64,000 nucleotides of DNA from Amoebophrya sp. A120 (Eukaryota; Protista; Dinoflagellata). Position 1 is the stretch's first letter; each line of letters starts with the position of its first letter. Shown here in pieces: positions 3,001 to 12,000 of the stretch. The stretch covers positions 342,969-406,968 of the forward strand of contig CAJINV010000004.1 of NCBI GenBank assembly GCA_905178155.1, in the 5' to 3' direction. Below the pieces are notes generated by a model. The model was not told the origin of the DNA. It searched no databases and saw only the letters and a program-made list of their open reading frames with translations. The position numbers and the translations under genes were made by a program.

Positions 3001-6000
3001 ACCGCGAGCATAAAGGCGTCAGATTTTTTTTGTTCGTTTCTTTCACACCACAAGGACGGCACCATTGTCGGCCGCCGAAGTTTATTCGCGCACGGGTTCA
3101 GCGGGCTTCTTTCTGTCAAAAAGGCGAGGCTCTTGTGACCCTTCTGGTCGTCACCTTTTTCGCTTGTGTTCGTGTCCGCGCGTCGCCACCCTCGATGGCT
3201 TTGGCGGCCACTCTTTGCAAGATTGCTTCACATGGGGACACCGTGCCCTTAGCCTGAAAAAGATGTTGATGATTTTTTTCAGAAGGAAAAAAGGTAGAGG
3301 AATTTGTACGTTGAAAATGCTGACTCAGATATAGAAGTTTAGATTTAATGTCACGAATGGGAATGGCTGCAGTTCATACGATACTTTTGCACAGGATGCG
3401 ACAACGAGTATGGTGAAGCTAGTTCCGAGATGCGAAGGCGTCGCGATCATTTAAAACACAGCGACGGCAAACTCCGCTGGGACTGGAAATGGAAGAAGGA
3501 GTCTGACGGCAAATGGTATAGTGAGAGGACAGTATATCGATATTTATCGAAGATGTATGAGCGCGACTACTTGAAAGATGACGAAGACGGGGGCTATGGG
3601 AGTGTCAGGATCGAAATCGACAAAAATAAAAAAATTGTAACGCATGAAATATAGGGCACGTAAGTCCTGTGTTGGGGAGCAGGCAAATATGACCGATTAC
3701 AAGCCTGTTTAGGGGAAGGCGATGCGCTGCCAGAGTAGCATGACAGAAGCAGTCTTCTTTGCCCAAGCAGCATGTTGACAGACTGAATTTTGGTGCTCTC
3801 GAAATTTGTCACGCGTCGCAAATTATTTCGATTTTGTTGATTTTGATCCTGGCACTTCTATAGGACGAAGAGGCAGCTGAAGTCCATGACCGTGAATGGG
3901 GAACCGAACCAGGATACCATCGGTATGGGGCTCTCAAACGTTACACTCTCAACTGTTACATGATTTTGTCATGCAAATAACACGATCTAGCAGTTTTCGC
4001 ACGATCAAGCCTTCTGCGCATGACAATCAACTTCTCGACGCGCTGAATAGCTCTAGAATCTGTCCCAAATCTGTAATGCAAAAGGCGCAGCCGCAGTCTT
4101 CCTCCTTTCACTTCTGGCATTCTTCTTGCATCCTGACTCCGCGACCCGGTGGCCTGACCATCTGCGGAAAGGTGCCCTATGGGTTGCGTTTGTGGTTTCG
4201 GTCGGTTTAGCATCACAAATTTATGTAACAGCTGAGAATGTAACTCCTGAGAACTCCATAATCGGAAAAGTCAGTCACGCGGATGGTGCGGCCACTCTGG
4301 TCATGTTCAACCTCCCGCGGGCGAAGCAGATCTATCAAACAAAAGATCATCTTTACGCTTAACGGAACCGGCTTTGAGAGTAGAAAATAGCAGTCATGCA
4401 TGAAAAAATCACTTCTATATCATAGTCTGTCAGTAACGCCATGCAACACGACGAAATTGCGTCCCTCTTCACCTCCTGCGTTCCCGCAAGCCAAATTCTT
4501 CCGCTCGCGTTAAAACTTCTTGACTTGATAAGATCACCCAGCTGTTCATCGTGTCCAACCACCGGCAGTCATACCAGACTATTTGCGGCCTCGAGTTCTT
4601 TCGGTTCACCAGTGTGGCGGAAGAGATCGACCCGAGTTATTGCAAGGAAAAATCCCCCCTCCCCATATTGAAAGTGCATCATTGTGAAAATTTGTGATGC
4701 AGATTCGTGCCCTCAAATCGGGTCTGTCTTGCAAGCAGGCACATTAAGGCGTCCCGCCACGTTATGCGGAAGCTTTGTAATGCCGTCAGGCCTTCTACAG
4801 GGTAGCCGTCCACCATGCTAGGCGCCTACACCAAAAGGCGCTTGCCTACGCTCAGGATCTGCGTGCAGTCCTCTACTGCAGCACAAATCTGATTTGTGTA
4901 TCCAACTCCAGCATCAGAAGTTTTGTTTTGATATGGGGAGGGGGGATTTTCTCTTTTGATAGGAGTATTTGGAAAGCCAGCAACTTTCCCTCCAGTGATG
5001 ACTACGACTTTTACGGTCTGACGAAGAATAACGAGGAGCACGATTCCAAGTTTAAAAGCCCCCGGCGTCGGTCGGGGGAGCCCCAGTGGGATGCCCGCGT
5101 GCAGTTGCCGCTGTACTACGCGCGCGGGCGGAGCACCAAGTGGCCTAACTACTGCACGCACACGGAGAAAATCCTGCAGACCTGCGACTGGGTATCCAGG
5201 AAAAAAACATTCATCCCCATCCATTTTTTGCATGACAAACACTGGAACCCACTACCTCTAGGGTGACTTTTTCGCTACCGCTACTACTGGTACAACTACC
5301 ACCTTTAGGGTGATTTTTTCGACGTAGGTGGGACTGTGTCTTAGTAGCTGTTTTCTTCGTTTTTTTACTTTTCTTTTAATCCCTCGGTGCTGGGAAAAGT
5401 TTTTGATGTACAGGGCTATTTCTATCCAGATATCCGCACAGCTTTCGTCGCGGCCGTCCCAGATGCTGTTTTGTTTGTCTTTCGATAGAAATCGCGTTGT
5501 CCAAAGATTTCTTCTAGAGTTTACCGGGTTCTTGTGTCGGCCCGCCGAAGCTTCGCGTGCGGGTTCAGCAGTCTTTCTTCCTTCGCAAAAGGTGAGTCTC
5601 TTGACCCTTCCGGTCGTCACCACTCCGCCGGTGTCTGTGCTCTCGGGCGCGTCACCCACCTCAGGACCTCAGGCTGCGGCTTGTCGAAATAGTTTACGAG
5701 GGGACGCCCAGCCCTTAGCCTTCCATCAACATGACAAACACTGCAAATTATGCATGTTCTGCATTACAATGACAAATTGGATGGGGATGGGTGTTTTTTC
5801 CTGCATACTGGGACTGGCGAAAGCAGCGGAACGATCAGCACACTTTCATGCACACTGGTGCCCTGAGGCTAGAAGCCAAGGATTGCCCCGCAGCTACGGA
5901 CGCTGGTGTCCAACCGGTGGGTACGACCGACGCGTGGAACAACAAGTGCATATGGCGTTCTCAACTCTTACATTCTCAACTGTTGAGTACATCATGATCA

Positions 6001-9000: not shown

Positions 9001-12000
9001 AAAGTTTTTGGCCAACCCCCGGCCGAGGAAAAAGCCCAAGAGGACGCCGCGCTGGAGCAGTCGCAAGAGCACGCAAAGAGTAGAGCGGGCGAACCTCCGG
9101 AGCAGGCTTCCGAAAGAAAGCTGCTGGAGGTGCACGACGAGGACGACGGCCAAGGCGCAGGCGACGATGACGACAAGGAATTATCCGGTGCTGGCTCTAC
9201 TACGTCCTCGAAGTCAGTGTCCTCCGACGGAACGGAAGTGGTGGGCGAGGGTCTTGCAGCGCCGGCTGCCCCACAACCACCTGCGACGATCTTTCTCCAA
9301 ACAGCCACAGTGCACAACTACAACCGGAAGATGAACCGGGATCGCGGTGCCATCGTCCAACCTCCTTCTTACAACTCGGCGAAACTACAGTACCCCACCG
9401 GCGCAACTGGCCACGACGAGGACAGCACCGTGAACTACGCTGTGGTCCGCGGCATCAAAGTAGGCGACCGAACTATGGAAACGAGAGTTACCAAGCTCGC
9501 GGGCCAGCAGGTGGAGCAAACTCTGCCCGGCGCATTCTCATCGTCTTCGTCGCTCATGGAGGCAGATACTAGTACAAGAGGGCAAAGTAAACAAGTAGAG
9601 CGACAGGAGGTATTGTGAGGAAAAATCCCCCCTCCCTATATCGAAAAGGCGTGCTTTTCAAAATGTGTCATGCTGATTTGTGGTCACAAATCGAGTCTGT
9701 CTTGCAAAAGAGCAAAGCCAGAGCTTTCGCCGCATTTCGCAGGCGATTTGTAATCCTGCTGCGCCAATGGACCAGACGTCTGCCGTGCTCAGTGCCTACC
9801 TCAGGCCACTCCTTTCCAGGCTTTGTATCTGCCTGCAGTGCTCTACTGCAAGACAAGACTGATCTGTGTACGCAATAACACAGCGTCACAGGCTTCCCTT
9901 TCGATAAGGGGAGGGGGGATTTTTCATTTTGATAGGAGGGCAGCAGTCACTTCTTTGTTGACCAGCAGGCTCTTCATCCGGAGGACGACCCAGGAGGTCT
10001 GTCGTACGAGGACCAGGTACACGCGATAGCAATGCTGCAAATGCGGGGTCGCAGCCTGTCCGTCGGAGCACGGCGCGCGGGGGCCTCTGCTGGGCGTGCC
10101 GAGGGCCGGCGATCAGGATTACCCTCCGGGCAGATGGCCATCAACTTACCCGGCACGACGGGCTCCGGGGACGGAACTACAACGGGCAGCGGCAACGCTG
10201 ACAAGCACGCAGCAGAACTCCGTTTCGAAACGGGCGGCGGTCCTCGCGACAGCAAAAGTACGCATGCCGGGGCTCCTGCTGCTGCACTGCTGCAGGAGCG
10301 GCAAACGGAAACTCTCGAGCAGCATCTGGCCTACCAGGCGGGAAGATGGTTCCCGGGAGCAGACAAAACGCAGTACGTCATCTCGGACCAGGACATCCCC
10401 GCCGACAGTACGCAGGCCCTGGATCCCAATGGCTACGGCTGTGAACCCTCAGAAGAAGACGCCAATGCGCTGCCGGAGATCGAAAAGCGGTGTTTGGACG
10501 AGCCAGACTGCGTGTTCATCTTTGATGCCAATAAAAATGGACGTGGGTGGCGCGTGTGCACAAATCGAGGGTACCGGGGGCCGGGACAAAACGACGGATA
10601 CATCCGCGTGAAAAAGGAACAGACTGTATCCTATGTGAAAATGGGGCCCACACCCCATAGTCAGTCAAGATGGGGAGTCTTCTTCGGCTAAACAAATCTA
10701 CAAGCTGTGGCTGTTTTGCGTGACAAATTTGGATTCGTAGTGTAGTGCTGTTTGAGCTAGCTCAAGCTTAGCAGCATCACAAATCTAGCTTATCATGCTG
10801 ATTGAAGTTGAACAAGCATCAGCATGACAAATTCCAAAACACGGCTAGACAATGCCTCTCATGGGGCTCCGCATGAGAAACATTTTCAGCATGCAGATTT
10901 GCATTACAACATTGGGGTCGTGGGGACGTTTTTCAATATGATAGATTGGCAACTACTACGAGGAAAAGTACAACAACACGGAGGACCTCACGTACTACGT
11001 ATGAGAGTGCACAACTCCCCCTCGTCCCCCTCATTTGTCATGCAAAATACCCAATCCACCGTTTGCCTCTTGGCACTGTTTGCATGACAAGTTCTGGCAG
11101 CGCGTTGTCCAATAATTTCTTCTAGAGTTTACCGGGTATGAGGCTACTGTTTGTCGAATTAATTTACGAGGGGACGCCCAGCCCTTAGCCTTCCAACGTG
11201 ACAAGTTCTGGCAGCCCAAATAGCACTACACTACAGTGTGAATTTGTCATGCAAAACCGGCACTCTTGCTGTTGCTTGTTTTGCTGTTCATGCCATACAA
11301 ATGAGGGGGAGGTGGGGGAGTTGTGCACTGTCATACTACGGCTGGCGGCTGGAGAACATCGACCAGGCAAAGCAGATATGCATTGCACACATGTCTGGGT
11401 CTGGAAGGATTCGAATTTGTGATGCGAATCCTACATGATGAGAAAATCTGTCATGCTCATGCGCCAGCAGAAAGTCCCACCTCTTGTTACCGAAAGAGCG
11501 ATGAATTTGTCATGCGGATTAGGCATTGCGATACCTGCTCGAAAAAATCTGTGATGCTAGGGCTTGCATGCCAGAGGATCTGGGTCAGGCTCAGGCAATA
11601 AAAGCTGCATGACCACAAGTGTCGCACTCTTCCAGACCCAGACGCATTTGCATTTGATACCAGACCCGGGGCCGGCACACGGAAACTTTGGCCTTCATCG
11701 CGGCGGGCGCGGATAGTACGGCCTACGACATTGCACTGCCCTATCCACAGAAAAAGACCCATCCACATCCATTTTTTGCATGACAAACACATGACTTGAT
11801 ATGTGTTTTGCATCACAAATTGAATGTGGATGGATGTTTTTTCCTGGATATGCCCGCGATGCGGCACTCCAACGCCGAAATGACGGGACGCGGGCGCGAG
11901 TTCAAGACCGGTCCGCTGGTGCTTCCCAACGTGGACATCAAAGTGGGGTTTGGCGGAATCGAAGAAGGAGGTAGTCGCATACAGCAGACCGAGGACTTTG

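Follow-up and report, generated by a model that had tools for sequence, protein, structure and literature searches.

Candidate target-primed retroposons at one position of a motif shared by Amoebophrya introners

What are the short inserts that interrupt introners of the dinoflagellate Amoebophrya sp. A120, and how do they come to end at the same base of the same motif? The question arises from a 64-kb stretch of its genome (contig CAJINV010000004.1, positions 342,969–406,968, forward strand; hereafter the window), in which four inserts of a family that we call R1 lie inside introners, repeats that account for 17% of the A120 genome according to passages of its authors' report (PMC7789003). 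A preliminary description of the window had proposed a sequence-specific non-LTR element (one that lacks long terminal repeats) that inserts at the introner motif, and this proposal is supported here by a fixed 3′ end, a ladder of 5′ ends, target-site duplications and empty sites. We consider it likely that the copies form a non-autonomous, sequence-specific non-LTR retroposon superfamily that integrates through target-primed reverse transcription (abbreviated TPRT) with a motif-specific first nick.

Results

Copies in the window

An exact 30-mer at the shared 3′ end occurs four times in the window, always on the + strand, with a chance expectation of 0. The copies and their host introners are arranged as follows.

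5696–5725, 8603–8632, 8659–8688 and 11166–11195, + strand: exact matches to the 30-mer
5193–5807, + strand: host introner 1, with TAT...ATA inverted ends; carries copy 1 (from the sequence and an inverted-repeat listing)
5188–5192 and 5808–5812, + strand: direct repeat CTGGG (5 bp) of host introner 1
5231–5244, + strand: 5′ target-site duplication of copy 1, CATGACAAACACTG; the full motif TTTG+CATGACAA is retained
5245–5729, + strand: copy 1, long form, 485 nt, with a ~140-nt module
5730–5743, + strand: 3′ target-site duplication of copy 1, CATGACAAACACTG
8536–8774, + strand: host introner 2, same family as host introner 1; holds copies 2 and 3 in tandem
8579–8592, + strand: 5′ target-site duplication of copy 2, CATGACAAAAAATA
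8593–8633, + strand: copy 2, 41 nt, tail alone
8634–8647, + strand: 3′ duplication of copy 2, CATGACAAAAAATA, within the former 5′ duplicate of copy 3
~8648–8689, + strand: copy 3, a 31-nt tail (8659–8689) after 11 nt of uncertain origin
8690–8706, + strand: 3′ flank of copy 3, CGTGACAAATGCGTGGA, an imperfect duplicate of 8634–8653 with the CG junction variant
11000–11335, + strand: host introner 3, different family, with inverted ends 10999–11038 and 11297–11336; carries copy 4
11083–11101, + strand: 5′ duplication of copy 4, CATGACAAGTTCTGGCAGC, 19 nt
11102–11196, + strand: copy 4, short form, 95 nt; 99% identity to copies at loci L001 and L016
11197–11215, + strand: 3′ duplication of copy 4; its first two bases are CG, not CA (one A/G difference, at position 2)

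Much of the preliminary description is borne out by this arrangement: the exact 30-mer marks four copies with a common 3′ end, their 5′ extents differ widely (41, ~42, 95 and 485 nt), and the three host introners fall into two families by their ends (GGATGGGGATGGGTG-type for 5193–5807 and 8536–8774, GAGTGCACAACTCCCCC-type for 11000–11335). The duplication said to follow each copy is present at copies 1, 2 and 4, where it measures 14, 14 and 19 bp and begins CATGACA, but the repeat at copy 3 is imperfect and degenerate. Copy 1 ends in CCTTCCA, an extra TCA and then the final A. Copy 4 lacks the ~140-nt module present in copy 1 and is not a pure 5′ truncation of it. Copies 3 and 4, alone among the window copies, have the CG junction variant. 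The 3′ duplication of copy 2 lies inside the former 5′ duplicate of copy 3, and copy 2 therefore represents a re-insertion at a retained motif. The window gene is read from the + strand, which puts all four copies in sense.

A genome-wide superfamily with a conserved tail

The 30-mer is found 15 times in the 115,520,608-base genome, never with a mismatch, and in all 15 of these youngest copies it is followed by A+CATGACA or A+CGTGACA. The tail core GGGACGCCCWGCCCTTAG occurs 132 times, compared with once for its reversed control, and a covariance model built on the tail's final 60 nt has 137 matches. The superfamily comprises ~130 copies with a conserved 3′ tail of ~60 nt around GGGACGCCCWGCCCTTAG. 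Divergent relatives, found when copy 1 and the longest copy served as queries (72–91% identity), resemble these queries in the 3′ part only, and the more divergent subfamilies (72–84% identity) retain the same tail and the same 3′ junction. The tail of the relatives ends in the GGGACGCCCWGCCCTTAG core and (CC/TT/TC)T(T/C)CCAA, then CATGACA. One sub-lineage has the tail end CCATCCAAA, followed by ATCAGAA, and uses the site CCAGC^ATCAGAA (the caret marks the junction). RNAalifold places an invariant 4-bp stem in the tail, with no covariation. At one locus (L077, C9:3053586–3055336), three ATCAGAA-type copies form a tandem array with a 766-nt period.

Integration statistics come from 55 distinct copies, ~45 of which are bounded by an exact direct repeat of 10–20 bp (median 17), the 3′ repeat beginning directly after the tail. 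Insert lengths across these 45 duplication-bounded copies range from 41 to 1,623 nt, and one further copy of ~1,840 nt has a 32-nt repeat with one mismatch. When placed on this 1.84-kb copy, members of the youngest subfamily start at 954, 1061, 1112, 1249, 1269, 1369, 1533, 1698, 1745, 1789, 1804 and 1804; the truncation ladder expected in the preliminary description is thus spread over twelve listed points. No shared, defined 5′ end was seen among the copies, and poly(A) is absent from them.

These features were compared with those of the known classes of element. The fixed 3′ end, the variable 5′ truncation, variable duplications backed by empty sites (see below) and the lack of terminal repeats are those of a non-LTR element inserted by TPRT. 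A short interspersed nuclear element (SINE) would carry an RNA polymerase III head derived from transfer RNA (tRNA), 7SL, 5S or small nuclear RNA (snRNA); a tRNA scan found no tRNA head in the element, and an Rfam scan matched no relevant RNA family. Introners and miniature inverted-repeat transposable elements combine terminal inverted repeats with short duplications of fixed length; the longest young copy has neither terminal direct nor terminal inverted repeats, and the duplications are long and variable. A scan of viral contigs found nothing.

The target motif and its occupancy

Except in the ATCAGAA sub-lineage, the 3′ junction is fixed at TTTG^CATGACAA. In 37 reconstructed empty sites the information is confined to ~12 positions, T.TG^CATGACAAA, and the other flanks come from visibly different repeat families. 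With information in the motif only and flanks that are unrelated, the element appears to recognise the motif and not one introner family. Random flanks would have told against the preliminary description; those of the 37 sites are neither random nor drawn from a single introner subfamily, as T.TG^CATGACAAA is all that they share. The eight ATCAGAA-type copies are all found at a single position of one introner family, CCAGC^ATCAGAA, with inserts of 314–1,623 nt and duplications of 11–19 bp, and these differing lengths indicate separate insertions. The position of the first nick is invariant across the 37 sites of the first kind and the 8 of the second, and the junction is the same in a related strain.

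The 12-mer TTTGCATGACAA occurs 7,491 times in the genome (3,746 and 3,745 on the two strands), compared with 5 times for its reversed control, and about 1–2% of the motif sites are occupied. CATGACA alone is found 173 times in the window (89 and 84 on the two strands). An apparent strand bias of the motif was set aside because the genome totals are equal and the window counts are 89 and 84. The motif contains UGCAUG, which we take to resemble an RBFOX-type splicing hexamer. After insertion, TTTG+CATGACA remains at the 5′ duplicate, whereas the 3′ duplicate has CCAA before it. The order of the tandem pair at 8579–8706, copy 2 upstream of copy 3, fits re-insertion at the 5′ duplicate. The preliminary description had most of the motif regenerated through the duplication; the 5′ duplicate keeps it in full, and the tandem pair records a renewed hit.

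A second insert family is present at window positions 6175–6435 and 4132–4209. It has a different tail, ending GGTC[C/G]GTTTA, and is found at the motif variant GCATCACAAA. Genome-wide, its 3′ end is fixed and its 5′ starts fall at query positions 117, 139, 155, 164, 168, 184, 189 and 193; at the copy at 4132–4209 the repeat is no longer than 5 nt (GCATC). That unrelated tails occur at one motif position can be read in two ways, as a single partner that recognises several tails, or as a nick that comes from outside the elements.

Filled and empty sites in a related strain

When metagenome contigs were scanned with the tail core, 15 from project JACKZZ01 proved to share the tail and the junction and to carry duplications of 11–20 bp. 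Filled and empty sites could be paired between the two closely related genomes, with flanks that are 86–97% identical. For contig L092, query 1–713 corresponds to C2:9386847–9387547 and query 998–1366 to C2:9387531–9387899 of this genome; the 284-nt insert is missing at C2:9387531–9387547, where the flanks overlap by 17 bp, the duplication CATGACAAGCTCCCACG of the contig. The ~300-nt insert of L096 is missing at C2:5307887–5307901, with a flank overlap of 15 bp and a contig duplication of 20 bp. The flanks of L100, an ATCAGAA-type copy, consist entirely of repeats. The possibility that an introner subfamily carries the insert as a fixed component, which would have counted against the preliminary description, is thus contradicted both by insert lengths and duplications that vary from site to site and by the two empty sites opposite related-strain insertions. 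Insertions that differ between the two closely related strains make the system young enough for experimental study.

The related-strain inserts L092:6214–6503 and L096:2397–2691 are 100% identical over 290–295 nt to C9:3061098–3061387 and C4:3126690–3126984 of this genome. These matches are non-orthologous, and orthologous flanks differ by 3–14%. Very recent activity common to both strains, exchange between them or constraint on the sequence could account for the identity. A protein search with one exon of the window gene, made for an orthologue, gave no match.

The same comparison includes presence/absence differences of introners. This genome has ~320 nt extra at C2:9387900–9388220, with a 5-nt flank overlap, and the JACKZZ01 contig has a 261-nt member of an abundant family extra at L096:2849–3108, with a 6-nt flank overlap.

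Splicing and orientation

Contigs of the runs X3 and X4 contain only about one-fifth of the stretch's words, together with spliced joints, and therefore behave as RNA. One of them joins 9604 to 9934, removing an introner. An X4 contig covers 5807–5944 and 7279–7402, and its match starts exactly at the right end of the copy-1 introner, which supports the removal of the enlarged 620-nt intron together with copy 1, the upstream side of the joint being too short to place. The earlier suggestion that the insert is spliced out with its intron accordingly has indirect support from an RNA contig that resumes at the introner end 5807. DNA contigs of paralogous introners skip 5246–5769, with 17 other letters between, and represent the uninterrupted form of the host family.

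Host strands were called from nearby open reading frames (ORFs) of ≥100 amino acids that have the codon GC pattern of the window exons (GC2 lowest, GC3 > GC1). By this crude, ORF-based method 21 copies are in sense and 2 in antisense to the host gene, and 45 are not callable (binomial p ~1e-4; the level stays the same when two of the three window-gene calls are dropped). In the same loci the motif itself is nearly even between the strands (36:34, occupied sites counted). The clustered copies of the window derive from at least two source variants.

Two further features of the window were recorded. A tiny hairpin introner at 8048–8161, with 35-nt arms and a 44-nt loop, weakly matches models of plant microRNA precursors; with scores that fall far short of the gathering scores, the hairpin shape alone is probably behind the match. 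From 60108 to beyond 60240, an assembly gap (N run) follows a ~64-nt tandem repeat, and ORFs that span the gap are artefacts.

Search for a reverse transcriptase

A Pfam search of the genome for the reverse transcriptase (RT) domain RVT_1 (PF00078) returned 106 hits. No ORF for an RT or an endonuclease was found in any copy examined or near any tail. The preliminary description had suggested that extending the longest copies might lead to an ORF with both activities; none was found in copies of up to 2.7 kb, and no coding sequence for RT plus endonuclease turned up in the element or in a partner sharing its tail. With no RT near any tail, we regard the copies as non-autonomous.

Several candidates for an autonomous partner were considered. 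At C11, the sole place where an RT and a tail are near each other, no open frame links the RT region to the duplication-bounded copy. Extension by 10 kb of three young copies without an obvious duplication revealed no autonomous partner, and the region upstream of L061 turned out to consist of other repeats. The one RT locus inspected, L084, has no similar tail and RVT_1 as its only Pfam domain, and a tblastn search with its RT against the collected loci gave no match. At this locus a complete dinoflagellate spliced-leader CCGTAGCCATTTTGGCTCAAG (L084:371–392; C5, ~5,697,870) lies ~190 nt upstream of the 1,306-amino acid RVT_1 frame, and the gene looks like a copy of a trans-spliced messenger RNA (mRNA). 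Four RT hits in the genome are listed with a frame of 1,306–1,307 amino acids, and a fifth of the same type with 1,012.

Competing explanations

Several observations weigh against TPRT by a motif-specific element. None of the 106 RVT_1 hits lies ≤10 kb upstream of, and on the same strand as, any of the 132–137 listed tails, a comparison of coordinates that would overlook RT genes which introners interrupt or which the assembly lacks. The longest copies (L018, 1.84 kb; L061, ~2.7 kb) have no coding ORF, and neither RT nor endonuclease was found to be encoded in or near the copies; an RNA intermediate, at which the RNA contigs weakly hint, is therefore inferred. Some copies are mosaics with the optional ~140-nt module and not simple truncations. 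The 21:2 sense bias is opposite to that usual for long interspersed nuclear elements (LINEs) in introns, and plain TPRT offers no explanation for it. Furthermore, 4 of the 15 youngest copies are in one 6-kb stretch (window 5245–11196) of one gene, all in sense, where ~0.01 would be expected, a cluster that chance selection from thousands of motif sites does not account for. The sense bias suggests a link to transcription, and together with the failure to find an autonomous partner with the same tail it favours a nick made not by a LINE endonuclease but by an enzyme that acts on the motif, in introner mobilisation or coupled to transcription or splicing, at which retroposon RNA that can reach an RT would prime opportunistically. 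Such a nick would also suit the second, unrelated family, which ends in another tail but likewise has a fixed 3′ end and a 5′ ladder at GCATCACAAA, and a motif that is common to many introner families (~7,500 occurrences). We nevertheless think an external nick unlikely: the tail end of the ATCAGAA lineage has changed along with its target, as expected if element and specificity co-evolve, no candidate nuclease is known, and according to passages of Farhat et al. (PMC7789003) no transposase was found in A120. We are equally doubtful that machinery linked to the introners or to their transcription cuts the motif in vivo, and that this cut is recorded by two or more unrelated retroposon families (the R1 superfamily, the GCATCACAAA family). 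Were this the case, the sense bias and the local cluster would be signs of a transcription-coupled step, and the insertions would mark sites of the introner machinery, which would help to approach the movement or recognition of introners in Amoebophrya.

A sense-only orientation would follow automatically if the inserts were RNA/cDNA chimeras, formed when an RT switches from a host pre-mRNA or intron-RNA template to the 3′ end of R1 RNA and then returns, the cDNA afterwards replacing the genomic copy by recombination. Short extra copies of upstream target sequence, often found at 5′ junctions (L070, L072, L096), do suggest template jumps. However, two precise jumps and a homologous replacement would be needed at each of ~130 sites, duplications of 10–20 bp that start at the same base would be left without a reason, and at least two copies appear to be antisense, so that we find this scenario very improbable. 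We give next to no credence to an insert that belongs permanently to the interior of one introner subfamily and spread along with it, or to a DNA transposon of the Helitron or IS200 type. All eight ATCAGAA-type copies do occupy one position of one introner family, but their inserts (314–1,623 nt) and duplications (11–19 bp) differ in length, the CATGACA-type copies have many unrelated flanks, the L092 and L096 inserts have empty sites, and uninterrupted paralogues of the host introner exist in DNA contigs. Helitron- and IS200-type elements, for their part, make no target-site duplication.

Discussion

TPRT at the introner motif, the explanation that we prefer, can be set out as a series of steps. 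Source copies would be transcribed, most likely in sense, within host pre-mRNA. An RT supplied in trans would recognise the ~60-nt 3′ tail, whose core GGGACGCCCWGCCCTTAG can form a 4-bp stem. The bottom strand would be nicked opposite TTTG^CATGACAA, a position given by the data, and cDNA would be primed there. An early stop of synthesis would account for the 5′-truncated copies that we observe (41 to ~1,840 nt), and a top-strand cut 10–20 bp downstream for the variable target-site duplications. The 5′ duplicate, carrying the whole motif, would be open to renewed insertion, as seen in the tandem copies. The insert, lying within an introner, would leave the mRNA together with it, in line with the RNA contig that resumes at 5807. 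A sister lineage with the tail end CCATCCAAA would use the second site CCAGC^ATCAGAA in one introner family.

Ribosomal DNA (rDNA), snRNA genes, telomeres and other transposons are known safe harbours for mobile elements. A retroposon aimed at one base of the introner motif would represent a new safe harbour, its cost being removed by splicing. To our knowledge, introner mobilisation and non-canonical splicing are not understood, and the R1 family may probe the motif naturally, reporting on how accessible it is, on its strand and on its connection with transcription. Sequences nested in introners can also mislead homology-based introner classification. A specificity of 12 bp could interest builders of site-specific insertion tools, given the enzyme.

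LINEs specific for rDNA, snRNA genes or microsatellites (the R1 and R2 LINEs, Utopia, NeSL, CRE and Dada) combine a precise first-strand nick at one sequence with a conserved 3′ end that is recognised by the RT, no poly(A), frequent 5′ truncation and co-transcription with the host unit, features that they have in common with, or that are expected of, elements of this type. In contrast to these LINEs, the Amoebophrya copies target no multicopy RNA gene and no microsatellite, have long duplications of variable length (10–20 bp) and contain no ORF. With SINEs of the stringent type and with SVA- or HAL1-like retroposons, the copies share a non-coding sequence, a conserved 3′ tail and a dependence on an RT in trans; unlike them, they have no polymerase III head of tRNA, 7SL or 5S origin, reach 1.8–2.7 kb, and have no partner LINE with the same tail among the sequences searched.

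The introners of the window match those published for A120, which in passages of Farhat et al. 2021 (PMC7789003) have inverted ends starting TAT and short direct repeats. R1 differs from these introners in that it has no inverted ends, makes another kind of duplication and sits inside them. Some A120 introners are attributed to non-LTR retrotransposons in passages of Gozashti et al. 2025 (PMC12130899), and nested inserts such as R1 could contribute to this attribution.

The preliminary description knew of no comparable case. As to introners as targets this still stands: a literature search for non-LTR elements nested in introners and for site-specific non-LTR elements of dinoflagellates found no description, and the passages searched in the Amoebophrya introner papers (PMC7789003, PMC12130899) make no mention of one. 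A LINE that targets a transposon, on the other hand, has a precedent in Tx1L and Tx1D. According to passages of PMC6719617, Tx1L and Tx2L of Xenopus laevis insert into the DNA transposons Tx1D and Tx2D. Like them, the element described here is of the TPRT type and aimed at a short sequence in an abundant, DNA-transposon-like repeat, a parasite of a parasite. Tx1L, in contrast, is autonomous, with an APE-type endonuclease and an RT, whereas only non-coding copies were found in Amoebophrya; in addition, the host repeat of R1 functions as an intron, the insert is removed from the mRNA, and the motif is common to many host families. Site-specific non-LTR targeting of another transposon is thus already known, and we know of no description of introners as the target. 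What sets R1 apart is a target that acts as an intron, copies that are solely non-coding, a sister lineage with a second target and a sense bias.

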